Positions 213 to 39,639 of a DNA stretch of 64,000 nucleotides are shown here, one piece after another (within the stretch, counting starts at the first letter, position 1; every line of letters starts with the position of its first letter). The notes beneath the pieces are model-generated. The model saw only the letters and a list, made by a program, of their open reading frames with translations, ran no database searches and was not told the origin of the DNA. Source of the DNA: Hydrolagus colliei (taxonomy: Eukaryota); assembly GCA_035084275.1 (NCBI GenBank), contig CM068778.1, forward strand, positions 1,426,001 through 1,490,000, given 5' to 3'. Both the position numbers and the translations under genes were made by a program.

Positions 213-761
213 CCCTTCTCTTAGCAGCACAGTAATACATCCCCTCCTGGGCTGTGTTGCTGATGGAGATCCTCAGTGAGGATTCCTTGTAGCCTTCAGT
301 CTGTGTAATGGTGTAATTGGCAGCAGCAAATTCCTTCTCATTGTTTGGTGTTGACAATGAGCCATATCCTATCAATGTGAGGCCTCCCTGGTGGAGTTGG
401 AGGTACCAGAGCATCATTTCTAGGGCTGAGGTGTTCTGGTAACATCCCAAGGTCACAGTCTCTCCCTCTTTGGCTGTGACTGTCCCCGGCCACTGAGTCA
501 CCAACTCTGCCAGTGACAGACCTGGAAAGACAACACAGTGAATGTAAACCCACTGACAGGGAATCTGAGCTGAATGTCCTGTAGAAGTTCCCAGGGTTAC
601 ACAAACGCACAATTAAAAATTGGAATCATTTTGCACAGAGTGGAATGTGATACAGAATCCCAGTGGGAATGGTAGCCTGAGGGGGGATTGAGAGATGTGG
701 AGAGATACTCACAGGGCCAGAGGATGGAGACCAGAGAGACAGTGAGAAAGTACAGATACAT
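213..761 (-). CDS. TRBV: TCR beta V segment (left array V1, type A)
   Basis: Leader exon 713-761 (ATG...T|GTGAGT), V exon 213-521 after CAG acceptor, Cys/Trp/YYC intact (QNTSALEM, GSLSTPNNEKEFAAANY). 23-RSS: CACAGCG 206-212, 23-nt spacer, ACATAAACC 174-182. Confidence 0.93.
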
Positions 762-1414
762 TGTTGGCTGAGAGTTGGTTTAACTTTGGGATCTTCACAC
801 CAGTGCCCAGTCTCTCCCCTGTGTTCTATACTCTTTCTGTATCTCTGACAGTCACTCTTTCTGCTTGACTTTCACAATGACACTCCCGTCTCCACCAAAT
901 TCTTTTCTAGCTTGGTATCTCACATACACTCTCTCGCTCTCTCTCACACACACACACTCCCCCTCTGTCTTTCCAGTGAAACTCTGGAAGAGTTCAAGAC
1001 ATCAATCACAACATTAAGTTGGAACACCCAATGGAAGTGATGTTTGACCCCACCCCTCGACCCAATGTGACATTGGTGGGAGGATTGAGGTGTGGGGGAG
1101 GGGTATGTGTCTTGGTGAAGCTAAAGCCTCTACCAGGGTATGCTAGGGTGGGGGTCACAAAATTGGTCACAGGTTCACAGTAAGACACAGAGCACACAGT
1201 GGACAGGCAAGTTCAGATGGAGCCGTGTCTACTTTGAAGCTGAATCTCTTTGATTCTCTGTGTTGATGTGCGTAATGCTTGCAGAGGCAGGGGCCAGGTG
1301 TTGTTTGGGGAACGGCTGATTTGCCTGTGTGTCTGTGTGTGTGTGGTGAACTGAGACGTTGTGTACCCTGTGTGAGGTTTATGTATGAGAGATCTGTCTC
1401 TCTCTCACACTGTG

Positions 1415-1967
1415 CCCTTCTCTAGCAGCACAGTAATACACCCCCTCCTGGGCTGTGTTGGTGATGTTGATCTTCAGTGAGGAATCCTTGTAGTCATCAC
1501 TCTGTGTAATGGTGTAGCCAGATTTAAAATTATTCTCATAATTTGGCCTGGAGTTGCTGCTATATCCTATCAATGTGAGGCCTCCCTGGTGGGGTTGGAT
1601 GTACCAGAGCATTGTACGAAGCAAAGTATTGTCGTGGTGACATGTCAAAGTCACAGTCGCTCCCTCTCTGGCTGTGACTGTCCCCGGCCTCTGAGTCACC
1701 AACTCTGCCAGTGACAGACCTGCAAAGACAATGTAACAATGTGATCCTGTTGTCGGGGAATCTGGGCTCAATGTGATGGGTGGATTCATGAGATGCTTAA
1801 CATACACAAAGAGGGTTCATCTCGGGCACAGGGAGAGGCAGGGGATGGGATAAGCTGAGATAAACGTCTGTTGGATTGAGAGTTGGTGGAGAATAGAGAG
1901 ATGATGAGAGTTACTCACAGGTCCAAAGGATGGAGATCAGAGAGACAGTGAGAATGGACAGACCCAT
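1415..1967 (-). CDS. TRBV: TCR beta V segment (V2, type B)
   Basis: Leader 1919-1967, V exon 1415-1719 (HHDNTLLRT, SSNSRPNY). 23-RSS CACAGTG 1408-1414, nonamer 1376-1384. Confidence 0.93.
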
Positions 1968-2854
1968 TGTTGGTCAGAGACTTGAGACTAACCGTGGGTT
2001 CTTCACAACAAAGCTACGGTTTCTCTCGCCCTCTCACTCTCTCTCTCTCTCCCTTACCCTCTCCCTCTGAAATGCTCTTTATATTTCAATGGTTGACTTC
2101 CTATTTCTTTCTCAAATAGCGCACCCTCTGTCACCCAAGCTTAGTCTCTCTCTCTCACGCTCACGTGATCTGTTTCTCTGTGGACTGAAGCTCTGACGAG
2201 TAAAGGCACCAGTGACCAATGTGTCGGCACCACATGAGATGTGAGTGTCCCGCCTCCAACCCTCCAGTGTGACATTGGACGGAGGTTTGAGATGTGGGGA
2301 AGAGGAGGTGACTTAGTGAAGCTACAGCCTCCCTCAGGGTAAGGGTTGGGAACAGTCGGTCGCAAAATGGGTCAAAGAGTCAGAGACAGAGGGAACAGTG
2401 TGGAGAGAGATGGACCCATGTCTACTCTAGACTTGAGTATCTTTTTTATGTCTGTCCCTCAATCAGCTGAGTTCATGATCCTGTGGGAGGTTTACGTATG
2501 ACTGGGAGTCGGTCGCAAGATTGGTCCCAGCTTCAGGGACAGGAACACAGAGAGGGCAACGTGGAGAGAAGGCCAGATGGATCCCTATCTAATCTGGCCT
2601 TGAATATCTTTTCTCCTTGCTGTCTCCCGTCTTCTCTTCTCTTTCCCCTGAACCCTTTTTTTCTCTCTGTCTTTCAATCATCTGAGTGGATGTGTTTTAT
2701 TTAACGAGATACTGAGGGCAGGTGGTGGTGGGGGAGGGGATGGATTGTGCATCTGCGATGGTGGGGGGCGGAGGGTGGCAGTGTGGTGGAGGGAATCTTT
2801 GTGTTTTCTGTGTGAACTTTATGTATGAGAGATCTGCCTCTCTCTCACACTGTG

Positions 2855-3391
2855 CCCTTCTCTAGCAGCACAGTAATACACCCCCTCCTGGGCTGTGTTG
2901 TTGATGGAGATCTCCAGGGAGGATTCCTTCTTGCCTTCTGACTTTGTGATGTTGTAGCCAGATTTAAAACCAGCCTCATAATAGATTTTTGCATAATAGA
3001 CATATCCAATTAATGTGAGGCCTCCCTGATGGGGTTGGAGGTACCACAGCATTACATCATATTCTGTGTCATTCTGGTAACATCTCAAGGTCACAGTCTC
3101 TCCCTCTCTGGCTGTGACAGTCCCCGGCCACTGAGTCACCAACTCTGCCAGTGACAGACCTGCAAAGACAATGTAAGATCCATCATTCTGCCCACAGGGA
3201 ATGTCCTGGTCTGATTCCCGGGATCACAGACACAAGCACACCCACACATACAGACACACACTCACAGAAAACTGGGATGTTATGAAATCCCAGTGGAATT
3301 GGGAGCCTGGGGGGGAATTGAGAGATGTGGAGAGATACTCACATGGCCAGAGGATGGAGACCAGAGAGACAGTGAGAAAGGACAGACTCAT
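2855..3391 (-). CDS. TRBV: TCR beta V segment (V3, type C)
   Basis: Leader 3343-3391, V exon 2855-3159 (QNDTEYDV, VYYAKIYY). Heptamer CACAGTG 2848-2854; variant nonamer ACATAAAGT 2816-2824. Confidence 0.92.
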
Positions 3392-4093
3392 TGTTGGCAG
3401 AGACTTGGAGTAACCTTGGGACCTTCCCACCAGAGCTAAGCTTATGCTCTTTCTTTGTCTCCCGTACTCTTGTCTTTGCAGTAACTTTCTTAACTACATT
3501 CCCCTCTCAGCAAACCGTTGTCCAGCTGTATCTCTCACTGTCTCTCTCTCTCGCTCTCACACACACACACGGTATCTCTGTATCTCTGAGGAGTGAACCT
3601 CTGGCAAAGTAAAGGCACCAATAGTATTCAGTGTCGGCACCAGATCGGAAGTGGCCAGCCCTTTCCGCACCCCCCTACCCACTCCCCCCCACCCACCACA
3701 CACCACACGCACTCACACTTGGTGTTACATTAGTGGGAGCTGAAGATGCAGGGGAGGGGAGGGGAGATTGTGAAGCTACAGCCTGCCTCAGGCTTTACAA
3801 TAGAAGGTCATAGCATAGGCCTTGGAGTCGGAGACATAGATACAGAAGGAACAGTTTGGAGGGTAGGACAGACAGAGCTGGAACTACTTTGACATCAACG
3901 TCTTTTATTCTCTGTCTCTCAATCGTCTGTGTTGATGTGTTTTATTTTTGCAGAGACAAAGGACAGGTGTTGGTGGGGGGCAGGAGCTGGCTTCTATGTC
4001 TGGCTCTGTGTGTGTGTCTGTGTGGTTGATCGAGTCATTGTGTTTTCTGCGTGAGGTTTATGTATGAGAGATCTGTCTCTCTCTCACGCTGTG

Positions 4094-4478: not shown

Positions 4479-4517
<39 letters not shown>

Positions 4518-4519
4518 TA

Positions 4520-4556
<37 letters not shown>

Positions 4557-4672
4557 ATAGTGGACCCATCGCAGCCAGACTGGGAGTCTGAGGGAGAACA
4601 GAGAGATTGTGGGAGATACTCACAGGGCCAGAGGATGGAGATCAGAGAGACGGTGAGAAACGACAGACTCAT
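4094..4672 (-). CDS. TRBV: TCR beta V segment (V4, type D)
   Basis: Leader 4624-4672, V exon 4094-4398 (QNESALNT, FYLLNPTY). CACAGCG 4087-4093, nonamer 4055-4063. Confidence 0.93.
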
Positions 4673-5313
4673 TGTTGGTCAGAGACTTGGATCAACTTGA
4701 GGATCTTCACACTAGAGCTCAGTCTCTCTCCCGTCTCTCTCTCACATACGCTCTTTCTGTATCTCTCTCTCTCTGTCTCTCCCTTCTATTCAACTTTCTC
4801 AACAACACTGCACACTGTCTCAAACGTTGTGTAGCTCTATATACCACACACTCTCACCTACATAGACACACAATTTCTGCCTTACCCACACATTCCCTCA
4901 CACTCTCTCTGTCTCTGTGTGTCTGTGGAATGAAGCAAACCAATGCCACCAATGTGTCAGCACCACATCGGAAGTCAGTGTCTCTCCTCCCCTCCCACCA
5001 CCCAACCCTAGAACGGAGGGGTCCAGAAAGCTTACAGTCTCCCCATGGTATGGACTGGGAACATTGGGTCGCAAGATTGGTCTCAGATTCACGGTCAGAA
5101 GCACAGAGAGCCATGTCTAAACTGGTCTTCAATCTCTTTTTCTCTCTGTCTCTCAAACGTCTGTGTTGATGTATTTTGTTTTTTGCAGAGGCTGACGGCA
5201 GGTGTTGGTGGTGGGAAAGGCTGGTTTGTGTGTATGTGAGTGTGGCGAAGATACACATTGTGTACCCTGTGTGAGGTTTATGTATGAGAGATCTGTCTCT
5301 CTCTCACACTGTG

Positions 5314-5862
5314 CCCTTCCCTTAGCAGCACAGTAATACACCCCCTCCTGGGCTGTGTTGCTGATGGAGATCTTCAGTGAGGATTCCTTGTAGCCTTCAG
5401 TCTGTGTAATGGTGTAATTGGCAGCAGCAAATTCCTTCTCATTGCTTGGTGTTGACAATGAGCCATATCCTATCAATGTGAGGCCTCCCTGGTGGAGTTG
5501 GAGGTACCAGAGCATCGTTTGGAGGGCTGAGGTGTTCTGGTAACATCCCAAGGTCACAGCCTCTCCCTCTCTGGCTGTGACTGTCCCCGGCCACTGAGTC
5601 ACCAACTCTGCCAGTGACAGACCTGCAAAGACAACACAGTGAATGTAAACCCACTGACAGGGAATCTGAGCTGAATGTCCTGTAGAAGTTCCCAGGGTTA
5701 CACAAATGCACAATAAAAAATTGGAATCATTTTGCACAGAGTGGAATGTGATACAAAATCCCAGTGGGAATGGGAGCCTGAGGGGGGATTGAGAGATGTG
5801 GAGAGATACTCACAGGGCCAGAGGATGGAGACCAGAGAGACAGTGAGAAAGTACAGATACAT
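5314..5862 (-). CDS. TRBV: TCR beta V segment (V5, type A)
   Basis: Leader 5814-5862, V exon 5314-5622. CACAGTG 5307-5313, nonamer 5275-5283. Confidence 0.93.
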
Positions 5863-6510
5863 TGTTGGCTGAGAGTTGGTTTAACTTTGGGATCTTCACA
5901 CCAGTGCCCAGTCTCTCCCCTGTGTTCTACACTCTTTCTGTATCTCTGACAGTCACTCTTTCTACTTGACTTTCACAATTACACTCCCGTCTCCACCAAA
6001 TTATTTTCTAGCTTGGTATCTCACATACACTCTCTCGCTCTCTCACACACACACACACTCTCCCTCTGTCTTTCTAATGAAGCTCTGGAAAAGTTCAAGA
6101 CATCAATCACAACATTAAGTTGGAACACCCAATGGAAGTGATGTTCAACCCCACCCCTCGACCCAATGTGACATTGGTGGAAGCATTGAGATGTGGGGGA
6201 GGGGTATGTGTCTTGGTGCAGCTACAGCCTCTACCAGGGTATGCTAGGGTGGGGGTCACAAAATTGGTCACAGATTCACAGTAAGACACAGAGCACACAG
6301 TGGACAGGCGAGTTCAGATGGAGCCGTGTCTACTGTGAAGCTGAACCTCTTTGATTCTGTGTGTTGATGTGCGTAATGCTTGCAGAGGCAGGTGTTGTTT
6401 GGGGAACGGCTGGTTTGCCTGTGTGTCTGTGTGTGTGTGTGGTGAACTGAGACGTTGTGTATCCTGTGTGAGGTTTATGTATGAGAGATCTGTCTCTCTC
6501 TCACACTGTG

Positions 6511-7097
6511 CCCTTCTCTAGCAGCACAGTAATACACCCCCTCCTGGGATGTGTTGCTGATGTTGATCTTCAGTGAGGAATCCTTGTAGTCACTAGTCTG
6601 TGTAATGGTGTAGCCAGAATTAAAATTATTCTCATAATTTGGGATGGAGTATCTGCTATATCCGATCAACGTGAGGCCTCCCTGGTGGGGTTGGAGGTAC
6701 CAGAGCATTGTATCAAGAGCTGATTCATTCTGGTAACATCTCAAGGTCACAGTCTCTCCCTCTCTGGCTGTGACTGTCCCCGGCCACTGAGTCACCAACT
6801 CTGCCAGTGACAGACCTGCAAAGACAATGTAACATCCATCATCCTGCCCACAGGGAATGTCCTGGTCTGACTCCCGGGATCACAGACACACACAGACACA
6901 TACAGACACACACACACACATAAATACACTCAACATATACGCAAACACAGGTGAGCATCACCCCAGGCAGAAGGAGTGGAGGATGTTATGAAATCCCAGT
7001 GCAAATGTGAGCCTGAGGGGGAATTGAAAGATGTGGAGAGATACTCACAGGGCCAGAGGATGGAGACCAGAGAGACAGTGAGAAAAGACAGACTCAT
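6511..7097 (-). CDS. TRBV: TCR beta V segment (V6, type E)
   Basis: Leader 7049-7097, V exon 6511-6815 (QNESALDT, SRYSIPNY). CACAGTG 6504-6510, nonamer 6472-6480. Confidence 0.93.
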
Positions 7098-7540
7098 TGT
7101 TGGCGGAGACTTGGATTAACCTTGGGATCTTCACACCATAGCTCCAGTTTGTCTCCCGCCTCTCTCTCTCTCTCTGAAACGGTCTTTCTGAATAACTAAC
7201 CTCTGGCACGCAAACTTAGTCTCCCTCTCTCTATCTCTCTCTCACACACACACAAATATGCTCTGTTTTCTCTGTCACTGTGGACTTAAACTCTGGCAAA
7301 AAATAGGCACCAATGACACCAAAGTGTAATCAGCACATGGAAAGTGGGTGTCCCTCCCCCCAGCCCCCAGTGTGACATTGGTGGGAGGTTTGAAATGTGG
7401 GGGAGGGGAGGCGTTATGGACAGGCATTAAGGACACACACAACAAGTTGGATCACTTAGGACTGGGAGAGGGACGTGCTGTGAGATTTCCGTGGATTTAA
7501 AAAGTTTGTGAGTAACAGGGAGATGTTGAGAATCACTCAC

Positions 7541-7589
7541 AGGGTCAGAGGATGGAGACCAGAGAGATGGTGAGAGAGCACAGACTCAT
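7541..7589 (-). pseudogene. Orphan TRBV leader exon (V exon deleted)
   Basis: 49-nt leader with ATG and GTGAGT donor, partial intron, but no V exon or RSS downstream. Confidence 0.8.
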
Positions 7590-7747
7590 TGTTCAGCAGA
7601 GACTTGGACTAGCTTTGGGATCTTCACACCAATAATCTTTCCATTCTTCTGCGCTGCTTCTGTATCTCTCACAGTCACTCTATTCTATTTAACTTTCCCA
7701 ATGACACTCCAGTCTCTCCCAAATGTGGTCTAGCTCTGTACCTCACC

Positions 7748-7783
<36 letters not shown>

Positions 7784-8290
7784 CTCGCTCTCGCACACAC
7801 ACACACACAGACAATCTCGCTCTGGTTCTGTTTCCTTGGCAGGAACCTCTGGTGAAGTAAAGACACCAATGATGCCAAACTGTTGGAACCCTCCAAAGGA
7901 AGCCTTAACCCCATTCCACTCCATCCCGACTCAGAGCGACGTTGCTGGGTGGTTTGAGTTGTGGGGGAGAGGTATCTGTCTCAGTGAAGCTGCAGCCCCC
8001 ACCAGGATATGGTACGGGAAGGCTTGGGTAGGTCACAAAATTGGTCACAGATTCACAGAACCACACATAGGACACAGTGGACAGGAGAGTCGAGATGGAG
8101 CCGTGTCTACTCTGATGCTGAACCTCTTTTATTCTCTATGTTGATGTGCTTAATGCTTGCAGAGGCTGGGGGCAGGTGTTGGTGGGGGAACGGCTGGTTT
8201 GTCTGTGTGTGTGTGTGTGTAGTGAACTGCGACGTTGTGTATCCTGTGTGAGGTTTATGTATGAGAGATCTGTCTCTCTCTCACGCTGTG

Positions 8291-8847
8291 CCCTTGTCTA
8301 GCAGCACAGTAATACACCCCCTCCTGGGCTGTGTTGCTGATGGAAATCTTCAGTGAGGATTCCTTGTAGTCACTAGTCTGTGTAATGGTGTAATTGGCAG
8401 CAGCAAATTCCTTCTCATTCTTTGGTGTTGATAAGTAGCCATGTCCTATCAATGTGAGGCCTCCCTCATGGGGTTGGAGGTACCAGAGCATTGTATTCAG
8501 GGCTGATTCATTCTGGTAACATCTCAAAGTCACAGTCTCTCCCTCTCTGGCTGTGACTGTCCCCGGCCACTGAGTCACCAACTCTGCCAGTGACAGACCT
8601 GCAAAGACAACAGAACAATGTGATCCCGCCGACAGGGAATCTGGGCTGAATGTCTTATAGAATATAGAAGTTCTCAGTATTACGTACACACAAAAAAACA
8701 AAAGGAGGCATCATCTTGGACACAGAGTGGAATGTGATATAAAATCCCAGTGGGAATGGGAGCCTGATGGGTATTCAAAGATGTGGACAGATACTCACAA
8801 GGCCACAGGGTGGAGACCAGAGAGACAGTGAGAAAGCACAGAAACAT
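8291..8847 (-). CDS. TRBV: TCR beta V segment (V7, type F, mosaic)
   Basis: Leader 8799-8847, V exon 8291-8598. CACAGCG 8284-8290, nonamer 8252-8260. Confidence 0.93.
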
Positions 8848-9405
8848 TGTTGGCGTAAAGTTGGATTAGCCTTGGGATCTTCACACCAGTGCACAGTATC
8901 TCTCCTGCCTTCTACACTCTTTCTCTATCTGTCACAATCACTCTTTCTTTTTAACTTTCCCAATGACACTCCCGTCTCTACCAAATATTTTCTAGCTTGG
9001 TATCTCACAAACACACTCTGTCTCTCGCACATACACATACACTCACACACAAACTAACTCTCCCTCTGTCTTTGACGTGAACCTCTGGCAGAGTTCAAGC
9101 CACGAATGATACCAAAAAGTTCGCCTTGTTGCAAGCGAGCCTTGACCCCACCCCCTCCTCTCGACCCAATGTGACATTGGTGGGAGGATTGAGGTGTGGG
9201 GGAGGGGTATATGTCTTGGTGAAGCTACAGCCTCCGCCAGGGTATGGTAGGGGAGGGGGTCGCAAAATTGGTCACAGATTCACAGTAAGACACAGAGCAC
9301 ACAGTGGACAGGAGAGTCGAGATGGAGCCGTGTCTACTGTGAAGCTGAACCTCTTTGATTCTCTGTGTTGATGTGCGTAATGCTTGCAGAGGCTGGGGGC
9401 AGGTG

Positions 9406-9920
9406 TGTGGAAGTATAATTAAACATATACCCGTGTGATCAAACTATATTATAATTAGAACTAATATTGTGATAATTACTAACCTCATTAAAGTAAAACA
9501 GACACATATACTGATCTAGTTGAACTAAAAGAACTCTCAGTATCTTGGTATTCAAAGAAGGTCTGGTAAACACTCATTTCTCACGGGAACAGACAGGCCT
9601 TGAGCCGGGTGGTACCACTGATGCCAGCAGCTATACCTATCTCCATGTGACTTTGATAAGTAATTACGTGTGTTAAGATAGCATTCATTTCTGTCCATTC
9701 CCTCTGTAATTCAACTAATACATTGTGTATTGTTTTAAGTGTATAAAAGGAGGAGTTGGACTGTTCCAAACTCAGAGGACAAGGGCGACTCCCATTGAGA
9801 GACGCATATTCTCCTCTCCTTTTCTAGTATCGTATTAATAAAGCGCATTCTAATTATCGGTTTGAAGTGTTGTTTTCTAATAGATAGAGAAATAATACTA
9901 CACAAATATCGGATTCAACA
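9406..9920 (+). mobile_element. Solo LTR (515 bp), copy 1
   Basis: Starts TG, ends CA, contains TATAAAA and AATAAA; 4-bp TSD GGTG (9402-9405 and 9921-9924) interrupting the conserved inter-V spacer. Confidence 0.88.
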
Positions 9921-10034
9921 GGTGTTGGTGGGTGAACGGCTGGTTTGTCTGTGTGTGTGTCTGTGGTGAACTGTGACATTGTCTATCCCGTGTGAGGTTT
10001 ATGTATGAGAAATCTGTCTCTCTCTCACGCTGTG

Positions 10035-10574
10035 CCCTTCTCTAGCAGCACAGTAATACACCCCCTCCTGGGCTGTGTTGCTGATGTTGATCTTCAGTGA
10101 GGAAGCCTTGTTGCCATCACTCTGTGTAATGTTGTAGCCAGATTTAAAATTATTCTCATAATTTGGCCTGGAGTAGCTGCTATATCCTATCAATGTGAGG
10201 CCTCCCTGGTGGGGTTGGAGGTACCAGAGCATTGTATCAAGGGCTGCATTATTGTGCTGACATGTCAAAGTCACAGTGTCTCCCTCTCTGGCTGTGACTG
10301 TCCCCGGCCTCTGAGTCACCAACTCTGCCAGTGACAGACCTGCAAAGACAACATAACAATGTGATCCAGTTGTCGGGGAATCTGGGATCAATGTGATGGG
10401 CGGATTCATGAGATGCTTAACATACACAAAGTGGGTTCATCTCGGGCAGAGGGAGGGGATGGGATAAGCAACGTCTGTTGAATTGAGAGTTGTTGGGGAA
10501 TATAGAGATGATGAGAGGTACTCACAGGGCCACAGGATGGAGATCAGACAGACAGTGAGAATCGACAGACCCAT
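10035..10574 (-). CDS. TRBV: TCR beta V segment (V8, type G)
   Basis: Leader 10526-10574, V exon 10035-10339 (QHNNAALDT). CACAGCG 10028-10034, nonamer 9996-10004. Confidence 0.93.
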
Positions 10575-11457
10575 TGCTGGTCAGAGACTTGAGACTAACC
10601 GTGGGTTCTTCACAACAGAGCTACAGTTTATCTCGCCCTCACTCTCTCTCTCCCTTACCCTCTCCCTCTGAAACGCTCTTTATATTCCAATGGTTGACTT
10701 CCTATTTCTTTCTCAAATAGCGCACCCTCTGTCACCCAAGCTTAGTCACTCTCTCTCTCACGCTCACGTGATCTGTTTCTCTGTGGACTGAAGCTCTGAC
10801 GAGTAAAGGCACCAGTGACCAATGTGTCGGCACCACATGAGATGTGAGTGTCCCGCCTCCAACCCTCCAGTGTGACATTGGACGGAGGTTTGAGATGTGG
10901 GGAAGAGGAGGTGACTTAGCCAAGCTACAGCCTCCCTCAGGGTAAGGGTTGGGAACAGTCGGTCGCAAAATGGGTCAAAGAGTCAGAGACAGAGGGAACA
11001 GTGTGGAGAGAGATGGACCCATGTCTACTCTAGACTTGAGTATCTTTTTTATCTCTGTCCCTCAATCAGCTGAGTTCATGATCCTGTGGGAGGTTTACGT
11101 ATGACTGGGAGTCGGTCGCAAGATTGGTCCGAGCATCAGGGACAGGAACACAGAGAGAGCAATGTGGAGAGAAGGCCAGATGGATCCCTATCTAATCTGG
11201 CCTTGAATATCTTTTCTCCTTGCTGTCTCCCGTCTTCTCTTCTCTTTCCCCTGAACCCCTTTTTTCTCTCTGCCTCTCAATCATCTGAGTGGATGTGTTT
11301 TATTCTTCGAGATACTGAGGGCAGGTGGTGTTGGGGGAGGGGATGGATTGTGCATCTGCGATGGTGGGGGGTGGAGGGTGGCAGCGTGGTGGAGATAGTC
11401 TTTGTGTTCCCTGTGTGAGGTTTATGTATGAGAGATCTGTCTCTCTCTCACACTGTG

Positions 11458-11841
11458 CCCTTTTCTAGCAGCACAGTAATACACCCCCTCCTGGGCTGTG
11501 TTGCTGATGGAGATCTCCAGGGACGAATCCTTGTCGTCACGTGTCTTCGTGATGTTGTAGCCAGATTTGAAACCCTCCTCATAAGTTGGGTTTAACAGAT
11601 AAAAATAACCTATCAATGTGAGGCCTCCCTGGTGGGGTTGGATGTACCAGAGCATTGAATCAAGGGCTGATTCATTCTGGTAACATCTCAAAGTCACAGT
11701 CTCTCCCTCTCTGGCTGTGACTGTCCCCGGCCACTGAGTCACCAACTCTGCCAGTGACAGACCTGCAAAGACAATATAACAATGTGATCCTGTTGACAGG
11801 GAATCTGGATGTACTGAGGGTGTTCCTGGGTTCAGTCCCTG

Positions 11842-11874
<33 letters not shown>

Positions 11875-15621: not shown

Positions 15622-15627
15622 CAGGTG

Positions 15628-28614: not shown

Positions 28615-28641
28615 TCAGTCAAGTTGCTTGCTGGAAAGATA
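28615..28641 (-). CDS. TRBC: TRBC exon 5 (cytoplasmic tail YLSSKQLD*)
   Basis: Long polypyrimidine tract then TTAG acceptor, phase 0, TGA at 28615-28617. Confidence 0.85.
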   Translation of the reverse strand, partial: YLSSKQLD

Positions 28642-31306
28642 CTAAGGGGGGAAAAAAAAACAGGAAAATCTAATTTAGTTTTCATGTCATAGAACAACTC
28701 GCGCTCACACAGTACCACTCAAACCACCCTCACATCTCAGAGCTCCACAGCAACTAACACTTATTCAATTCAATAAAATCATTCAATATTTACCTTGCTT
28801 TTCCAGCCAATGAAGGATATCATAACGCCATAGACAACACTTTTACAGACCAGGATTAGATAAGACAATTTTCCGGTCACCATTCTCTCCTGTATTTCAT
28901 CTAAGAAGCAAAATAAATTTCTAAGTTAATGGATGTGTCCTCTGACTCTTTAACTCTCTCTGGATTCTCACATAACTTACTGTACACTATACAAAGCAAA
29001 TTTCTTGTTGTTGTGGATTAGCCTGTGATTTCACTCCATATTTCTCCATCCATCTCCCTCTCCCACCCCAATGTCTATTTACCTCCTTTACCTCAGTCCA
29101 TTTGCATATCGCCCAAGTCTCTACCTAACTTCTACACAAATAGAATTAGTTGCTGTTTATTCGTTGCTCTCCCACATCAATCCATCCCCTGACTCCTTGA
29201 GTCTCTCTACCCATCTCATGTTCTTACCTCAATCCCTTCTCCTAGGTACCTGCAGCAACAACAACTTACACTTATATAGCATGCTCCACAATCTGAGGAA
29301 GGGGGAGGTTTTAGGTGGCATTTGAAAAGGGGGAGAGAGGTTGCAACGCAGAGGGATTGAGAGAGAGTGTTCCAGAGTTTACGGATTTCCTATGCGAAGG
29401 TGCCCGTCGAGCAGTGGTGGTTTGGGGGAATGAGGAGGTCAGGAAGCCAGGGAGATGTCAGGGACTGAGTGGAGTGAGTTACTGTATTTACAACACCACC
29501 AAAATTACATTTCTGGAGCGCCTTTTACGTTGGGAGGACGTCCCAAGGCCGTGAATGGCCTTGAAGCCGAGGACGAGGATCTCGAATTGGACCCTCTGGG
29601 TGACGGGGAGCCAGTGGAGACGGGCGAGGGTGGGAGTGATGTGGTCACGGAGCCCGATGTGGGAGCGAACACGAGCTGCAGAGTTCTGAATGGTCTGCAG
29701 GCCAGTGATGGGAGTGGCTGGGGAGGAGGCAAGGGAGGGAGCAAGGCGAAGGGATTGTGTGATGGAGTTCCAGAGGATGGGGGCAATGAGGCTGAAAGCC
29801 CGGCTGCTGATCTAGAATATATATCCAGTCTTTCTCGCTCACCTTTTGTCATCGACTTACAGAATTCTAGAGGGGAAATAAAGAGGAAAATGTTACTATG
29901 TTTTTCTGCATCACCTCAGACCCGAGTAGCTTTCAAATTAATNNNNNNNNNNNNNNNNNNNNNNNNNNNNNNNNNNNNNNNNNNNNNNNNNNNNNNNNNN
30001 NNNNNNNNNNNNNNNNNNNNNNNNNNNNNNNNNNNNNNNNNNNNNNNNNNNNNNNNNNNNNNNNNNNNNNNNNNNNNNNNNNNNNNNNNNNNNNNNNNNN
30101 NNNNNNNNNNNNNNNNNNNNNNNNNNNNNNNNNNNNNNNNNNNNNNNNNNNNNNNNNNNNNNNNNNNNNNNNNNNNNNNNNNNNNNNNNNNNNNNNNNNN
30201 NNNNNNNNNNNTGGACGTCTCAAAGCGCTTCACTGAATATACCGTAAAGTGAATTGACTGTATGTATGGGGGCAAAACGCGCCAGCCAATTGCGAACAGC
30301 AGCATTCTCCCCCCACCCCCCCACAAACAGTCGTGGATTGAAATAGATTCAGAGATTCATAGAATTTTACGGCACAAAAGGAGGCCATTCGGCCCATCTA
30401 GTCTGTGCCGGCTCTTTGAAAAGAGCGATTCAATCCCACTGCCCTGCCCGCTCCCCATAGCCTAATAGACCCGTTCTCCCTAAATAAAGATCTAATTCCC
30501 TTTTAAAAGTTATTATCGAATCAGCCTCCACCACCTTTTCAGGCAATGCATTCCAGATTCGAACAACTCGCTGAGTGAAAAAAATTCTCCTCAGCTCCCC
30601 TCTACTGCGCCTTGAAACTATTTTAAATCTGTGACCACGAGTCACAGATTCGCCCACGAGTGGAAATGACGAATTTATTATTGTACTATTTTTTTGAAGG
30701 ATTATAATTAGGCCTGTGGAGTAAGGAAACTTGCACAATGTTGTGCTCTGCTAGGAAATGAACCCAGCCATGGGATAGAGACTTCTCTGATCACAGATGT
30801 TAAATTTGTGTGGATCAGATGCCTGGTTGATCTTGACGATGGATTTCTCTGTGGGTCAGACAATGATGCAAACATATCTATATATCTATGTACCGGTATG
30901 TAGATATATATATATTTACCTCCTTTTGGTTCCACCTTCTTCACAAATGTCTCTTTCTTAGTTCCGTACTTGATGTGGGTGACATGACAAGTTATACCCT
31001 TGGCTGATACGAAGTCGGCAGCAGGGAGACGCAGGCGACTGCTCACAGAATACAGGGATCCTGACTTTGTGGATTTCGAATCGGTCTGAACTCTGCCGCT
31101 GTCTTCATTATTAACCTGTCAAAATGGTCCACATTAGGAAATGTCTCCGACCAGTTGCAGGGTTAGGAGGAGACCATTACTCCAACGCCACAACAGTTCA
31201 TGTTGTCCCCTCACTCTGTCTCTGGTGTTTCTGTCTCCAAATCCCTGACCAATTGCACGGCTGACCACAGCTCTATCTCACTCTCTGGTGCCTGACTTGC
31301 GATGAA

Positions 31307-31337
<31 letters not shown>

Positions 31338-34300
31338 AACTTACATTATATAGTGGAGAATTGACTGTATATTTGTGGGTGAAACGCGGCAGCCAAATTG
31401 CGCACAGCAGTGTCCCCCACAAACAGTCACGGAAATGGGGCCGGGGGAGAAAGGGGGAAAAGAGGGTAAGGGGGGAGAGGGAGGGAAAGGTGGGGTGGGA
31501 TAAGGTCAGGGAGGAAGATGGGGGGGGAGAAATCCCATCGATTCCACCCAAAATCAGCGGGTGATTTTGGGTGGAATCGATTTCAGCTCCGAGCTGTCGG
31601 CCACCATCCGGCAGCCTTGCAGAGGTCTCTAGCACCTGCCGCAACTATTAATAATATTAATAAATAATAATAATGTTTGCATTCGGTATGACACATCGTT
31701 GGGATCTCTCAAAGCGCTTTGTAGAACACGTTGCAAATCGGAGTGTCTGCATTTTGTTGGTGAATCACGGCAGCAAGTTGTGCATAATAATGTCTCCCCG
31801 AACACTCGTGGAATTATTTATTTCGGAAGGGAATATTAAACCTCCCATCCCCCCTGTTGGAATGTAGCAGTTTTGTGTGTGACTCTGTAACAACACGTTT
31901 GTGTTTATCTGGCAGTTTAGACTGATTTAGACCAGATAACTATGTATTGTAGAAATATAACAAGTGTGTGTGACCATTGGATCAGATAACTTTGTAGTGT
32001 AGAAAGATAACAAGTGTGTGTGACCATTGGATCAGATAACTTTGTAGTGTAGAAAGATAACAAGTGTGTGTGACCATTGGATCAGATACCTTTGTAGTGT
32101 AGAAAGATAACAAAGTGTGTGTGACCATTGGATAACGCTCCTAATATGGGCATGTTGGTTGGGCAATACTGTCTTAACTGATTGGGTCCTGTAGGACAAA
32201 GAAAGCAAACTGAGTATATATGTGTTGAATCCTCCCAAGATTCAACGGTTCGAACTAACAAGTAACTATTCGAATCACAAGAGGAGTGCCTGTACTATAA
32301 CTGGGATGTAGTACTGAATAAAAAGATCATAAAACTCTGTGATGACTGAAGATCGTTTCTTTGAGAAAACTCCCATTTCTTCTGAATCTAACATTTGGCG
32401 TAGTCGGCAGGATCACAGAAGGTAACAAGGACAGACATTGAACACGGATTGCCTAAGGTGAATCGGTAAAGGTGTACGGCTCGATTGATAAGGGCGGAAC
32501 ACGGTCTACCTCAGTTGAATCGGTAAAGGTGTACGACTTGGTTAACAAGGGCGGAACACGGGCTACCCCAGATAAAGTTACGGAATCTTTGTTAAAATTC
32601 CTCGGCACGTGTGGAGCTGTTTGAACCTTCTCGTGATTCTTAAAGAAAGAACCGGATTTGCAGAAGACAAGAAAACAAAGTGCGGTCAGGCGTAATCTCG
32701 ACGTAAGAAATATCTCTTTTGTTTGAGTTTGGATCCTTAGGAGACGTTATACAAGCGGGTTTTAGGTTTTAGAAAATTACCAAGTTTGAGAAGCCCATTC
32801 AGATCCTCGGGGTGTAATCCTCTATCGGCGTTGAAATTGCCTACGGCCTCAAGAAAAATTGGTAAAAATGGTAGAAAAAAAAAGTGAAAAAAACACTTTA
32901 CACAGAGGGCAGGCACCTCCGGACGTGTCTGAAACCGAAATGTTGAGCGAACTAACACAAATCTTCCAGAAAAATATGAACTTACTTAAGCTCCAGCAGA
33001 CTTTGGAAAATAAATATAACATGGGAACAGGACAGTGGTCTTTACCCAATATACAAAAATTATGGGGAAAAACTACCCGCTCAAAGGGGAACGACCAGAC
33101 AAGGTTGGCGATGATTGTCATGAGTCAGCTACGACAACGGAGTGAAATTATGCGTAATACCCAGTACGATACAGATATGAAGAAAGCAAAGGAACAATTA
33201 AATGCAATGGCAGAACAATTGAGTAAAAAGCAAGCTGAAATTGAAAAGCTTAAAACTGAACTGTTTAAGCAAAAGGAGAAGGGCGTAAAAATATCGAGCG
33301 CTCCATCGGTACCGTATCAATCAGTATATCCATATTTAAATGTGTTACATGCATCTATTCCATCTTTACCTCCTGAGTATGCCAGTGGTTATGAGTGTGA
33401 TCCTTGGGACCCGTCGACTTGTCTACCGGACCCTTGGGGGGGAGATGATAACCGTCCACCGCAATTGAGACCTATGGTCACCCGATATCGTGCCCGGCGC
33501 GGACAGGGACCAGCAGGTCCGCCGGCAGCACGACCCGAAGAAGAGGCGAACGTCGGTCCGGTGGGCGGGGCTCAGGCATTCGGAGCTGTTTGGGTACCTT
33601 TTCATGAACACCAACCTGCCGATCCGGACAGAATCGACAAATGGTCAAAAGCATTGCCAGACCCAAAGAAAGGGTCATTGAAAACATGGGAAGAGCTTAA
33701 CCGAATACGTACCATCTATCGGCTGCATCCTCAAGATGGTGTGCAAGTTTTGTCAGTAATGGCAACCGGTCGAAACACCCAAGAATTGCAACAACAAGTT
33801 TATACCGCATTGGGCGAAAATGGAAATAATTTGAACGCTGGATGGGGAGCGATCAGACAATGGCTGAGAAATCAAGGTCCGGCCCGGGTGGACTGGAAGA
33901 AAATATCAGGCTGTACCCAAGAACCGACCGAAACGGTTGCTCAGTTTGATGAGCGCTTCAGGGCTGTGTGGATTGAACATTCGGGACTGGCTAACGACAT
34001 GCAAAATGCAGACTTAGATGCTAACGAGGAGGGTCCTTTGAAACCAGCTTTCATGGCCGGACTCAAAGGGGAAATATCAAAATTGGTAAAATTAACGTTG
34101 CCCCTGTGGGAAGAACAAGGAGTAACGTTCGGTCAGTTGGTTGCACGCTGTATCCAAGTCGATAGGGACCAAGGGGTACAACTACGAGCATTTCAACGAG
34201 GAGAGAGAACTTCAGCGGGACAGTCATCCTTTGGACATAAACCTGGCAAATGCCGCAGATGTGGTAAAGAAGGTCACTGGGCTAAAACGTGCCGTGTTCG

Positions 34301-36568
34301 AATGAATGGGAGTGGCGGCAACTTTAAAGCGTTTTCAAATAAGCAAAATCAGGATGATGACTGTGATGAGATACATAAACCTCGATCAAATCGGGAGCGT
34401 TTTGAAAGTCTTTCCTCTCGAATGCAGCGAGCCCTGTTGAATGCCGCTGAAGAAATTAACAAATGCTGTAGGTCCTGCTTCTCGACAGGTGTCGACGGCT
34501 TGGGGAGATTCACCAAAGGGAGGACACGATTTGGTCCCGGGAGAACGAGTGTATATCAAGAAGATACATAAAAATCCGTTAGGTGCTAAGTGGGAAGGTC
34601 CCTACATGGTGTTGCTGACAACTCCTGCTGCAGTAAAAGTGGAAGGAAGGAAGGCTTGGATTCACGCGTCACATGTGAAACGCTCCACTGTTTAAGCACT
34701 GTGTGTTTATAATTTTTTAAAAAAAATTTTAGAATACTTTCATTTCTGTCAATATGCATAGGGATGGTAACGGTAACCACGTCCCAACAGGGAGAAGCCC
34801 ACGCTATCGATAAGCACAATGTGGCAGTTAATACCTATTTGTTAATGACACTTAAAACCTCCATTGCCACAAATCGTACAAAATGTTGGGTTTGTAAGAT
34901 TCCCCATAGTACAAAGGAAGGTTTTTCAATAAGGGTTGTTCCTTTTAATGTCACAATGATGTTACAGTGGTTATTGTCTCAAAACAATATTGGTAATGTT
35001 ACTGAATTGGAAATGGACACGAATGGGCCAGTTTTGCCCAAACAGCTGGAATCAGCTGGTTATTCCTCGACTCAGTTTTCGGGATGGTATCACCCGGACT
35101 ATAAGGATACTTCACCAAGCCCTTCCCCCTTTATCTTAACAGTATTATGTTTAGATTGTTGTGACAGAGTCACAAAAGGGGGGATTGTGGGAATGTAGCA
35201 GTTTTGGGTGTGACTCTGTAATAACCTATATCCCCGATGAGTCTGAAAATATTACCAACCTAGTATCTCACATGCATAGAGAAGTAAATAGGCTTAGATA
35301 CGGCGATCCCCTTCCGGCCTGGTGGAAAGCCTGGTTGGAGGGATGGGGAGCCTGGTTCATGCACGTGCTAGTTATTGTGATAGCATTGTTATTAATCTTT
35401 TGTGTAACAATACAATGTATAAAAGTTTGCCTTAATCGTTTGGGCTTCTGTTGCACCAGGTGTTTCGTTGTCGCTTTTACATAAGCAACATCAACAGTAT
35501 TATGTTTAGATTGTTGTGACAGAGTCACAAAAGGGGGGATTGTTGGAATGTAGCAGTTTTGTGTGTGACTCTGTAACAACACGTTTGTGTTTATCTGGCA
35601 GTTTAGACTGATTTAGACCAGATAACTATGTATTGTAGAAATATAACAAGTGTGTGTGACCATTGGATCAGATAACTTTGTAGTGTAGAAAGATAACAAG
35701 TGTGTGTGACCATTGGATCAGATACCTTTGTAGTGTAGAAAGATAACAAAGTGTGTGTGACCATTGGATAACGCTCCTAATATGGGCATGTTGGTTGGGC
35801 AATACTGTCTTAACTGATTGGGTCCTGTAGGACAAAGAAAGCAAACTGAGTATATATGTGTTGAATCCTCCCAAGATTCAACGGTTCGAACTAACAAGTA
35901 ACTATTCGAATCACAAGAGGAGTGCCTGTACTATAACTGGGATGTAGTACTGAATAAAAAGATCATAAAACTCTGTGATGACTGAAGATCGTTTCTTTGA
36001 GAAAACTCCCATTTCTTCTGAATCTAACACCCCCCACCCCCCACACACACACACAATGCAATCTGCCAATTGACTACCTAAGGCATTCCTATTTACTGCT
36101 CAGTGAAATAAGAATAAGAATCGTTGCATTTGATAAAACACTTTTCACATTTTTTGGACGCCTCAAAGCCTTTAAAAAATTTACTGTGAAATAAATTGAC
36201 TATATTTTGTGGGCAAAACACAGCAACCAATTGCGCACAGCAGCCTGCAACAGATATCCATGGATTGAAACAAACAATTTCTTTTTGAGGTTGTATTATC
36301 AGGCATGCGCCGAAATGTGCTAAAATATGGTAAAAATGTAGGGATTGTCCAATTAATTGTCTTGTCAAAACTACATTGTTTTAACACCCCTGAGAGAGAG
36401 AGAGAGAGAGACTTACCAGCACATCATCAATTTTCCACTCTATCTCCACTGTGTCCGGGTAAAACTCTGAGACAAGACACACCACAGTTCCCCAATTCTC
36501 TGTCCTCAGCTCTTCCTGGGATGCATCGTAGAGGAAGACTTTGGGCTCGCGTATCTGCTCATCGTTCC
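28615..36568 (-). CDS. TRBC: TCR beta constant region gene (5 exons)
   Basis: Spliced: xNDEQIREPKVFLYDASQEELRTENWGTVVCLVSEFYPDTVEIEWKIDDVL|VNNEDSGRVQTDSKSTKSGSLYSVSSRLRLPAADFVSAKGITCHVTHIKYGTKKETFVKKVEPKG|EFCKSMTK|DEIQERMVTGKLSYLILVCKSVVYGVMISFIGWKSK|YLSSKQLD*. All junctions GT-AG with compatible phases. Confidence 0.93.
28794..28900 (-). CDS. TRBC: TRBC exon 4 (connecting peptide + TM with conserved Lys)
   Basis: TTCTTAG acceptor, LSYLILVCKSVVY motif typical of C-beta TM, AAG|GTAAAT donor. Confidence 0.92.
29290..29810 (-). mobile_element. Degenerate L2 LINE 3' fragment in TRBC intron
   Basis: Minus-strand translation resembles L2 RT C-terminus (AGLSAS...LQL...SRPFTALG), followed by an L2-like tail. 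Confidence 0.55.
29843..29866 (-). CDS. TRBC: TRBC exon 3 (24-nt hinge with interchain Cys)
   Basis: TTTCCCCTCTAG acceptor, AATTCTGTAAGTCGATGACAAAAG, donor GTGAGC; phase 1-1, encodes EFCKSMTK. Confidence 0.85.
29943..30211. other. Assembly gap (269 N)
   Basis: Run of N inside TRBC intron 2. Confidence 0.99.
30345..30666 (-). mobile_element. CR1 LINE 3' fragment nested in a Deu-SINE
   Basis: Encodes FPLVGESVTRGHRFK...GYGERAGQWD, near-identical to the 3' end of the CR1 at 56.8-58.3 kb, with the (A)TCTATGA-type tail; SINE sequence resumes on both sides. Confidence 0.88.
30920..31115 (-). CDS. TRBC: TRBC exon 2 (second half of Ig C1 domain)
   Basis: TTTTGACAG acceptor, YSVSSRLRL and CHVTH motifs, G|GTAAAT donor; 196 nt. 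Confidence 0.93.
31855..32393 (+). repeat. ERV 5' LTR (539 bp)
   Basis: TGTTGG...CTAACA; four copies of the CAAGTGTGTGTGACCATTGG core of a 50-bp repeat; TATATA-like box and AATAAA. Confidence 0.93.
32396..32413 (+). promoter_or_regulatory. Primer binding site, tRNA-Ser
   Basis: TGGCGTAGTCGGCAGGAT is the exact complement of the vertebrate tRNA-Ser(AGA/UGA) 3' end ...ATCCTGCCGACTACGCCA (recalled sequence). Confidence 0.85.
32459..32570 (+). repeat. Two imperfect 57-bp tandem repeats in the ERV leader
   Basis: TGAATCGGTAAAGGTGTACG...AAGGGCGGAACACGG starts at 32459 and 32516. Confidence 0.75.
32868..34571 (+). CDS. gag: Retroviral Gag (open ORF; C-terminal tail read out-of-frame from IN remnant)
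   Basis: Coiled-coil-like N-terminal region, capsid MHR-like QEPTETVAQFDERF, zinc knuckle CRRCGKEGHWAKTC; no stop over about 568 codons. Confidence 0.88.
   Translation: MVEKKSEKNTLHRGQAPPDVSETEMLSELTQIFQKNMNLLKLQQTLENKYNMGTGQWSLPNIQKLWGKTTRSKGNDQTRLAMIVMSQLRQRSEIMRNTQYDTDMKKAKEQLNAMAEQLSKKQAEIEKLKTELFKQKEKGVKISSAPSVPYQSVYPYLNVLHASIPSLPPEYASGYECDPWDPSTCLPDPWGGDDNRPPQLRPMVTRYRARRGQGPAGPPAARPEEEANVGPVGGAQAFGAVWVPFHEHQPADPDRIDKWSKALPDPKKGSLKTWEELNRIRTIYRLHPQDGVQVLSVMATGRNTQELQQQVYTALGENGNNLNAGWGAIRQWLRNQGPARVDWKKISGCTQEPTETVAQFDERFRAVWIEHSGLANDMQNADLDANEEGPLKPAFMAGLKGEISKLVKLTLPLWEEQGVTFGQLVARCIQVDRDQGVQLRAFQRGERTSAGQSSFGHKPGKCRRCGKEGHWAKTCRVRMNGSGGNFKAFSNKQNQDDDCDEIHKPRSNRERFESLSSRMQRALLNAAEEINKCCRSCFSTGVDGLGRFTKGRTRFGPGRTSVYQEDT
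34466..34695 (+). pseudogene. pol: Integrase C-terminal (GPY/F) remnant; PR/RT/RH/IN core deleted
   Basis: PGERVYIK...KWEGPYMVLLTTPAAVKVEGRKAWIHASHVK, a typical class I retroviral IN tail. Confidence 0.85.
34731..35484 (+). pseudogene. env: env remnants (SU N-terminus and TM C-terminus)
   Basis: Hydrophobic signal-like segment and NRTKCWVC, then TYIPDESENIT...membrane anchor; the two are joined through a PPT/U3 copy and are out of frame. Confidence 0.8.
35529..35540 (+). promoter_or_regulatory. Polypurine tract
   Basis: AAAAGGGGGGAT immediately before the 3' LTR TG. Confidence 0.88.
35541..36029 (+). repeat. ERV 3' LTR (489 bp)
   Basis: Appears identical to the 5' LTR except for one fewer 50-bp unit. 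Confidence 0.93.
36417..36568 (-). CDS. TRBC: TRBC exon 1 (first half of Ig C1 domain)
   Basis: CTCCCTCAG acceptor in phase 1 (matching J), TVVCLVSEFYPDTVEIEW motif, CTG|GTAAGT donor. Confidence 0.93.
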
Positions 36569-37756: not shown

Positions 37757-37805
37757 CGAGAAAAATCAGTTTGGTGCCACCGCCAAAGTATGCTGGATTG
37801 GTGTT
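37757..37805 (-). CDS. TRBJ: J beta segment NTNPAYFGGGTKLIFL
   Basis: FGGG motif, G|GTGAGT donor, heptamer CACAGCC 37806-37812, weak nonamer. Confidence 0.88.
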
Positions 37806-38099
37806 CACAGCCAGTAATGTCTGTCATATATCTCCCAGCTGAGAGACAGTGGGACAGACAGACAGACAGACAGAGAGAAGAGAAAGAGGGTGGTGGACAG
37901 AGAGATTGACTGATACAGAGAGAGACTGGGTTTAGAGGCTAAAGTCGGTGGGGAGAAGCTTGGTGAGGTGGGGCTGTGGGGGAGAGGGAGGGAGGCAATG
38001 GGATGAGAGTGGAGACCACGAGCGGGGGGGAGAGAGCAGGGACTTGGGGAAGTTAGAGGAGAGAGTTTGGACACAAATGTAAAATATAGTTTAACTCAC

Positions 38100-38148
38100 C
38101 GAGAAAAATCAGTTTGGTGCCACCGCCAAAGTATGCTGGATAGTTGTT
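38100..38148 (-). CDS. TRBJ: J beta segment NNYPAYFGGGTKLIFL
   Basis: Tandem duplicate (343-bp offset) of the J at 37757; heptamer CACAGCC 38149-38155. Confidence 0.88.
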
Positions 38149-38312
38149 CACAGCCAGTAATGTCTGTCATATATCTCCCAGCTGAGAGACAGTGGGACAG
38201 GCAGACAGAGGGAGAGACAGAGAGAGGGGAGAAAGAGGGTGGTGGACAGAGAGATAGACATGGACAGAGAGAAAGAGAGAGAGACAGACCCTCACCTCCA
38301 GTCAATACTCAC

Positions 38313-38360
38313 CCAGGACCCTCAGTCTTGTTCCTTCTCCGAAATACGCAATGGTGTTTG
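38313..38360 (-). CDS. TRBJ: J beta segment NTIAYFGEGTRLRVL
   Basis: FGEG motif, G|GTGAGT donor, 12-RSS CACATCA-12-ACGTAAACT at 38361-38388. Confidence 0.9.
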
Positions 38361-38813
38361 CACATCATGTCAATGACTGACGTAAACTCTCCCTCTCTCT
38401 TGTCTCCCCTTCTCTCATTCCCTCTCTGCTCTCTCCATCTTTGACTCTCCCTGTATCCCACTCTGTCTCTGGCTCGCTCACCAGCTCTCTCCCGCTCTCA
38501 CATCTTTCCCGCCTTTGCTATCTTCTTTCTCCCATTCTCTTACTCCTCCATCTCTCTTACTCTCCCCCCCTCCCCCCTTCTCCTGTTGACTCTCTTTTCT
38601 TTTCTCTCCTGTCACTCCCTCTCTTTTAGCCTCTCACAACTTTTCTTCCAGTTCCTACCATCCCTCTCCTCTCCCTCTCCTCCCACACAACTAAAGCTAA
38701 CTGGAAGTTACCCATAAACACCATCAGTCATGGACCTGCTGAGATCCCCCCCACCCCCCCCCCTCCCCACAGCTAGTTTTTGTACAGCTGTCAGTGAGAG
38801 ATGTATCACAGTG

Positions 38814-38828
38814 GCTCCCCCCTGTCCC
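38814..38828 (-). other. TRBD: D beta segment GGGACAGGGGGGAGC
   Basis: 5' 12-RSS (heptamer 38829-38835, nonamer 38848-38856); 3' 23-RSS CACTGTG-23-ACAAAAACT (38775-38813); vertebrate-conserved GGGACAGGGGG core. Confidence 0.95.
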
Positions 38829-39639
38829 CACAATGTGAAATGCTCGTTCAAAAACACCCACCAACAGAGAGAGTGAGGGAGGGGGAGGCAGAGTAGCCAC
38901 AAACCCACAATCCCTCCCCCTTCCCACCCACCTCTCTTGCGGTCCAAAATGGATGTGGGATTTAGGCGTCCAATAGAGGAAATGAACATTGATAATATGG
39001 TCACTCAACCCACGACTGTTCGTGGGGAGGCTGCTGCGTGCAATTAGCTGCTGCGATTCGCCCTCAAAATCTACACTCGGATCTCATTTACGGTGTGTTC
39101 TGTGAGGCGCTTTGAGACGTCCAGAAGACGGTCCAGACGTTCAGTTGTTCCGTGGTACACAAATGCAAGGATTATTATTGTGTAACTCTGCAGCCTGTGC
39201 CCGCCTCTGCACCAGGCTCGGTGACCATATCACCCCCACATCCCCGCCCAACACCACTGTCTCCCCTTCATGCAGAGGATAGAGGTTCATAGAGTTCGAG
39301 ATCGTTTGAAGCCCTCCCATAGATTTCCTCCCTGCTAATTATAACAAATAATAATATAACAATCCTTACATTTATATAGCGCTTTCCACATCTTATCGAC
39401 TTCTCAACCCACTACAATTCTATGATCTGCTAATCCCCAAGCAAACTCCTCCCGCTCCGCGGGCTCTGGCCTGCTTTATGTCTCCCGCCTCTCCCCGCCA
39501 CACCATTGGTGGGCTTCTCTCCAGCCACTCTGCCCCCATCCTCTGGCGATTTTCCTGTCAATTGGATCGTCCTCCCGATGTGAAAGGCAGGACTTGAATG
39601 TAATTGTGTTGTTGGTTCTTGTTGTTGTAGCCGCAGCTA

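Follow-up and report, generated by a model that had tools for sequence, protein, structure and literature searches.

Work on the oldest antigen-receptor loci takes the cartilaginous fishes as its reference point. Their T cell receptor (TCR) loci have been called translocons in a review (PMC6795676), and our literature search found no description of the germline layout of the TCR beta (TRB) locus of a chimaera or a shark. In Atlantic cod the TRB locus consists of three consecutive forward translocons of 30–40 kb, each with 10–14 V, one D, 7–8 J, and one C, and joins across these translocons are formed (PMC13149839). The loci of pike and salmonids are head-to-head paired V-D-J-C loci (PMC10464911). 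Here, we describe TRB genes of the chimaera Hydrolagus colliei in a 64,000-nt stretch of DNA (GenBank assembly GCA_035084275.1, contig CM068778.1, positions 1,426,001 to 1,490,000 of the forward strand), which is called the window below, with positions counted from its first letter. The order of segments on the minus strand of the window is 10 V genes, D, J, C, an inverted V gene, and a further 18 V genes, which are referred to as the left V array. The probability that these 18 genes belong to the next V-D-J-C cassette, in a TRB locus built of repeated self-contained cassettes, is estimated by us at about 0.78.

The in-window cassette and the V genes past C-beta

The V gene calls in the whole window were based on a scan for recombination signal sequences (RSSs), on translation of the flanks, and on splice-aware annotation. 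The segments that define the layout are listed below, together with their counterparts in locus L001 from Callorhinchus milii, the elephant shark.

213–24635, minus strand: left V array, 18 intact TRBV genes (ATG, GT/AG, open frame, C23/W41/C104, RSS)
Left V-exon 3′ ends, part 1, minus strand, each with a 23-RSS directly to the left: 213, 1415, 2855, 4094, 5314, 6511, 8291, 10035, 11458
Left V-exon 3′ ends, part 2, minus strand, each with a 23-RSS directly to the left: 12642, 13844, 16257, 17680, 18877, 20081, 21529, 22789, 24117
15583–15621, minus strand: RSS-only stub, a 23-RSS with neither V nor leader by annotation
25721–26367, plus strand: inverted V, single and divergent (leader 25721–25763, V exon 26025–26328, 23-RSS 26329–26367 directed toward C)
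26740–27170, minus strand: candidate enhancer, a non-coding block with conserved sequence, placed between the C gene and the inverted V (28210–28620 in the elephant-shark locus)
37757–38388, minus strand: J region, three usable J, each with a 12-RSS, colinear with J1/J2 of the elephant shark
38360–38313, minus strand: J1, NTIAYFGEGTRLRVLG, 12-RSS
38148–38100, minus strand: J2, 12-RSS
37805–37757, minus strand: J3 (..PAYFGGGTKLIFLG), 12-RSS
38814–38828, minus strand: D segment GGGACAGGGGGGAGC, 5′ 12-RSS 38829–38856, 3′ 23-RSS 38775–38813, with a counterpart in the elephant shark
40327–54113, minus strand: right V array by annotation, 10 intact TRBV genes 5′ of D, the own V genes of the in-window cassette

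The RSS scan detected 29 minus-strand 23-RSSs in the window, which have the nonamer ACATAAACC and a spacer that hardly varies. The left array contains 19 of them, with heptamer positions from 212 to 24116, and all but one adjoin an intact V gene (18/19). Each left V gene has a 49-nt ATG leader, a GT/AG intron of 165–353 nt, and a V exon of 305–309 nt, in which Cys23, Trp41, and Cys104 are kept and which is free of stop codons (18/18). The V genes of the right array are also all intact (10/10), with an ATG, a 49-nt leader, GT/AG splice sites, Cys23, Trp41, and Cys104 and without stop codons, and the length of V exons across both arrays is 302–309 nt. The V heptamers have the sequence CACAGYG, with a mixture of CACAGCG and CACAGTG that is alike in both arrays and is found also in the elephant shark, and a promoter-proximal block before the ATG is common to the left and right V genes. 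The substitution pattern, that is the nonsynonymous (dN) and synonymous (dS) rates and the contrast between framework regions (FRs) and complementarity-determining regions (CDRs), is alike in both arrays as well; the V frameworks are about 9–10% diverged and the CDRs about 50%, with dN/dS below 1. The intactness of the left V genes is suggestive of a working set, although it falls short of proof.

The RSS scan and a tblastn search with the elephant-shark beta chain found a single D and a single C in the window, and the same two methods found no hidden D, J, or C within the left array. The extra CACAATG heptamers located 51 nt past some V RSSs belong to the repeat unit. The observation of an earlier, sequence-only reading that the 18 left V genes are on the minus strand, with the sole D-J-C located to their right and also on the minus strand, was confirmed by the RSS scan, the annotation, and tblastn. 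Compact and bounded, the cassette in the window measures about 28 kb; its span from D to the inverted V is 13 kb, as compared to 16 kb in the elephant shark. J2 and J3 are a duplication, and two degenerate J-like remnants are located near 37440 and 36950. The layout is of the cod type in that, behind a complete V-D-J-C unit, the same strand carries a further V array, which would be that of the next unit, and it is not an array of mini-clusters with one V per cluster, because the in-window unit has 10 V genes and the next one has at least 18.

The cassette is closed by one V gene of TRBV30-like geometry: it follows C on the 3′ side but is encoded on the other strand, and its RSS is directed toward C. 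This inverted V matches the Pfam V-set profile (E 5.5e-12) and shares 81% identity with its counterpart in the elephant-shark locus, and a protein search with it found one MetaClust protein, which is 75% identical. Its leader and that of the nearest left V are placed head-to-head at a distance of 1.1 kb, and there is an inverted repeat (24557–24628 and 25722–25793). The conserved non-coding stretch at 26740–27170 is a candidate enhancer. It contains the ETS-like AACAGGATGT, which is kept in the elephant shark, and the RUNX-like AACCACA, which is not conserved there. In the mammalian TCR-beta enhancer, AACAGGATGT is the ETS-type core.

The comparison of the two arrays showed that they have no common megablast block of 1.5 kb or longer, and that the closest left-right pair of V exons is 89% identical. 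In the V tree the subfamilies span both arrays, while the terminal clades are array-specific. Such a pattern of tree and divergence is what would be expected if a multi-V unit was duplicated long ago and blocks were later duplicated locally. Because of the identity of at most 89% and the lack of a shared block of at least 1.5 kb, the explanation that the left array is a haplotype or duplicate-assembly copy of the right array was rejected. Block alignments showed that the left array grew by duplications of 5–7 kb blocks, which are 95–96% identical. At the stub (15583–15622) about 1.1 kb with a whole V gene is gone in comparison with the sister block 4538–11457, and the breakpoint is the border between heptamer and coding sequence, where the block alignments 4538–8291 = 11861–15622 and 9399–14167 = 15621–20404 join. 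The sequence-only reading had listed this stub separately as a possible germline RAG footprint. In evolutionary terms the two arrays are units of their own, and the unit in the window is self-contained.

A separate observation concerns all V genes of the window. Divergence in the codons of CDR1 and CDR2 is about fivefold that in the framework codons, at synonymous and nonsynonymous sites alike (dS 0.7–0.9 versus 0.11), which suggests that gene conversion may homogenize the frameworks while the CDRs stay apart.

The constant gene and the chain type

The constant gene consists of five exons, and each of their borders is GT-AG. The exons and the features of the introns between them are as follows.

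36417–36568, minus strand: C-beta exon 1a (..EPKVFLYDASQEELRTENWGTVVCLVSEFYPDTVEIEWKIDDVL), first half of the C1-set domain, Pfam C1-set profile positions 1–38, 77% identical to the elephant shark
31855–35912, plus strand: internally deleted long terminal repeat (LTR) element in the intron between exons 1a and 1b, with a gag open reading frame (ORF) containing a zinc knuckle and a murine leukemia virus (MLV)-type integrase C-terminal fragment
30920–31115, minus strand: C-beta exon 1b (VNNEDSGRVQTD...ITCHVTH...VEPKG), second half of the C1-set domain, Pfam C1-set profile positions 42–84, tblastn with elephant-shark protein P0009
29943–30211, no strand: assembly gap (N run), the sole one in the window, in the intron between C exons 1b and 2, 77 nt from exon 2
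29843–29866, minus strand: C-beta exon 2, 24 nt, interchain Cys in EFCKSMTK, aligned to elephant-shark ELCAFITK
28794–28900, minus strand: C-beta exon 3, 107 nt, transmembrane (..GKLSYLILVCKSVVYGVMISFIGWKSK), conserved Lys, 67% identical to the elephant shark
28615–28641, minus strand: C-beta exon 4, YLSSKQLD followed by stop, assigned by position and alignment to elephant-shark exon 4 (SPSGKRFD)

The C1-set domain is split over two exons by a phase-0 GT-AG intron, which is 5301 nt long here and about 1.2 kb long in the elephant shark, where the two halves are located at 21500–21647 and about 22815–23014 of the locus. A single exon encodes the C1-set domain in Heptranchias perlo, a sevengill shark (L002, 38905–39252). 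The split looks like an intron gain in the chimaera lineage within an immunoglobulin (Ig)-domain exon, and an intron gain at such a site is rare. The LTR element, the LTRs of which are 98–100% identical, looks like a recent insertion. It is not what broke C exon 1, because the same phase-0 GT-AG split is present in the elephant shark without that element.

The RSSs are those expected of a TRB locus, with a 23-RSS on V, a 5′ 12-RSS and a 3′ 23-RSS on D, and a 12-RSS on J together with the FGxG motif; beta and delta are not separable in this way, while TCR gamma and alpha are ruled out by the presence of a D with 12/23 RSSs. The single membrane Lys and the orthology to the elephant-shark gene point to the beta rather than the delta chain. 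The closest proteins to exon 1b in a library of 1.84 billion proteins include an elephant-shark protein, and the cluster of that protein contains XP_042201712.1, to which exons 1a, 1b, and 3 are 77%, 49%, and 67% identical and which has the automatic NCBI name "T cell receptor beta chain-like". Sequence searches of the PDB had generic Ig C1-set domains as best matches, which are unspecific for chain type. The window is colinear with the elephant-shark locus over the last V, D, J1, J2, the C exons, non-coding blocks, and the inverted V, at about 70–80% identity, and the anatomy of that locus is the same, with V genes, D, two J, a C gene with the split exon, and an inverted V.

A protein search with the elephant-shark C region, which covered proteins of similar length, found two proteins. 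Among elephant-shark proteins there are two types of J with C exon 1a (P0020 and P0022), the second of them from a rearranged V-D-J-C protein. Of 50 residues in exon 1a, 14 differ between the two types, as compared to one residue in the rest of C. From these two types it follows that the elephant shark has two or more D-J-C sets, which is independent but indirect evidence in favor of a second D-J-C in the chimaera. The pattern could be explained either by homogenization of the 3′ exons between C genes, or by two alternative exons 1a with common downstream exons.

Recombination geometry and the use of the left V genes

The argument about the use of the left V genes is based on the RAG rules and 12/23 pairing. 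The 23-RSS of each left V is located on its 3′ side and is directed away from the 5′ 12-RSS of D. Hence, according to the RAG rules, the joining of a left V to the D in the window leaves both coding ends on the excised piece, so that the V-D-J-C coding joint would go to a circle and the signal joint to the chromosome, and a direct V-to-J join would have the same outcome. This is what the sequence-only reading had proposed, and the RSS orientation agrees with it. No way for such an excised circle to replicate or segregate is known, and it would be diluted as thymocytes proliferate. Because the circle is not inheritable through thymocyte divisions, the D-J-C in the window is no workable partner for the left V genes. 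The idea that they nevertheless join this D, with the receptor expressed from the excised V-DJ-C circle, has in its favor that the geometry permits such a circle, on which the V promoter would lie together with C and the candidate enhancer; given the dilution, and with no evidence for it found in the analysis of the window, we consider it extremely improbable.

In the arrangement that we prefer, that of repeated cassettes, the first cassette would consist of 10 V, one D, three usable J, the five-exon C, the candidate enhancer, and the inverted V. The 18 left V genes would be the V array of the second cassette, and its D-J-C and inverted V would be located to the left of the window. The left V genes would then join the D-J of the second cassette by ordinary deletion. 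The V genes of the first cassette would use their own D-J-C, and a longer deletion could also reach the second cassette, as in cod. Each inverted V would join its own D through inversion. The duplication of the whole cassette would be the older event, and the 5–7 kb block duplications would have enlarged the arrays afterwards.

Two other explanations of the left array were weighed against this arrangement. It could be an orphan array, a recent duplicate without its own D-J-C, which is unused or rarely used and has stayed intact through its youth. The block duplications at 95–96% identity, the framework dN/dS of about 0.8, and the lack of a second D-J-C in the window are all consistent with this explanation. 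Nevertheless, it appears unlikely, because the left subfamilies differ by more than 10% in the frameworks and by about 50% in the CDRs, yet the ATG, splice sites, frame, and RSS are kept in 18 of 18 genes. Marginally less probable still is an assembly artefact, in which the left stretch would be misplaced, chimeric, or an uncollapsed second haplotype. The presence of a gap between the two parts, the repetitive nature of V arrays, and the attribution of a comparable pink salmon layout to assembly (PMC10464911) would speak for it. However, positions 1–29942 are free of Ns and carry C exons 2–4, the inverted V, and all left V genes with the 19 RSSs, with no scaffolding needed to connect them, and because of this the presence of same-strand V genes past the 3′ end of C-beta is independent of the gap. 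The gap is not crossed by any reading frame. Its right flank aligns to the start of the matching elephant-shark intron, and its left flank to the end of this intron and exon 2; since both flanks match one intron, the order and strand across the gap are as a single gene requires. The left and right V genes also differ by at least 11%, which is too much for one array to be a haplotype copy of the other. Misplacement of the left array by misassembly, which the sequence-only reading had named as one outcome that could overturn it, is thus made unlikely by the location of the gap inside a C intron and by the N-free stretch, as far as the assembly sequence can be relied on.

The proposal of the sequence-only reading that the left V genes serve a D-J-C further left is the best reading of the evidence, although its key element, the second D-J-C, is one that we infer and would lie outside the window. 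Besides this, several other points weigh against the arrangement of repeated cassettes. The order of the arrays and the copy number in the 95–96% identical blocks rest on the assembly. The framework dN/dS of about 0.8 is not by itself a proof of selection on the left V genes, many of which are recent copies that could be intact through youth. Additionally, no V was found within 4.4 kb past the inverted V in the one elephant-shark cassette analyzed, which thus offers no example of a tandem layout.

The right end of the window and comparison with known loci

The part of the window to the right of the minus-strand V genes contains the following features.

54429–61470, plus strand: non-TRB island bounding the minus-strand V array, with long interspersed nuclear element (LINE) fragments and a G protein-coupled receptor (GPCR) ORF
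54429–58187, plus strand: LINE reverse-transcriptase fragments inside the island
60553–61470, plus strand: intact, intronless ORF of a rhodopsin-type GPCR (Pfam 7tm_1, E 8e-25)
62800–63803, plus strand: two V genes, by annotation
62800–62945, plus strand: truncated V exon of this set, cut after FR2
Leader 63197, V exon 63460–63764, plus strand: full V gene of the 62.8 kb set, RSS heptamer CGCAGCG, with CAC lost

The minus-strand V array ends at 54.1 kb and plus-strand V genes are present from 62.8 kb, which the sequence-only reading had not mentioned. The GPCR ORF is located between these two sets of V genes, near the LINE fragments, and a look-up in a gene-position collection had no exact counterpart of it. 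The full plus-strand V probably cannot rearrange, judging from its CGCAGCG heptamer. The TRB locus includes an opposite-facing part. A broader arrangement may be put forward tentatively, and we regard it as doubtful: the locus could comprise a minimum of three V(n)-D-J-C-inverted-V cassettes that are semi-autonomous, of which two would form a tandem and the third would face these, with their own enhancers and an age shared with the elephant shark. Such a locus would stand midway between a single translocon and the Ig mini-clusters of cartilaginous fishes, and the choice of cassette could resemble that among the Ig heavy chain (IgH) clusters in shark B cells.

If the arrangement of repeated cassettes is correct, the duplication of whole translocons, documented so far in teleosts, would also have taken place in the lineage that is sister to bony vertebrates. 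Each chromosome could then attempt a productive beta chain independently more than once, and by what means a cell is held to a single beta chain would become a testable question. Studies of the chimaera repertoire would have to assign each V to its cassette.

The similarity to mammalian TRB, which has the layout Vn-(D-J-C)x2-TRBV30, includes the 23-RSS on V, the 12/23 RSSs on D, the 12-RSS on J, the 107-nt exon 3, the inverted V after C, and, between these two, the candidate enhancer. The D core GGGACAGGGGG is also shared with mammalian TRBD1. On the other hand, in mammals there is no V between the two D-J-C clusters, there is one inverted V per locus, and the Ig domain of C is encoded by one exon. 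The Ig clusters of cartilaginous fishes (V-D-D-J-C) and their TCR gamma (TRG) V-J-C cassettes are similar to the chimaera locus in being repeated self-contained rearranging units. However, an Ig cluster has one V, while the chimaera TRB unit is a small translocon with at least 10 V genes.

With regard to teleosts, the chimaera locus resembles that of cod in its tandem units of the same orientation, in V genes located past C-beta on the same strand, and in V subgroups that are common to the units. The differences are that the cod units are reportedly all forward, lack an inverted V, and have 7–8 J, while the chimaera units end in an inverted V and have 2–3 J. The chimaera units are also unequal, with 10 V versus at least 18, a plus-strand V set is present from 62.8 kb, and the D-J-C of the second unit is placed by us outside the window. 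With pike and salmonids the chimaera would have in common that a chromosome carries several complete V-D-J-C units. At the right end the plus-strand V genes point toward the minus-strand array, in keeping with a head-to-head pair as in these fishes, but the chimaera feature described here is a same-strand tandem, which in pink salmon was treated as a probable assembly error (PMC10464911). The view of the sequence-only reading that such a locus is unusual for a cartilaginous fish holds in that we found none described in this group, but tandem or paired TRB loci as such are published in cod, pike, and salmonids. The chimaera is a new lineage for the published tandem TRB layout, with the unit-closing inverted V and the unequal V arrays as its own features.

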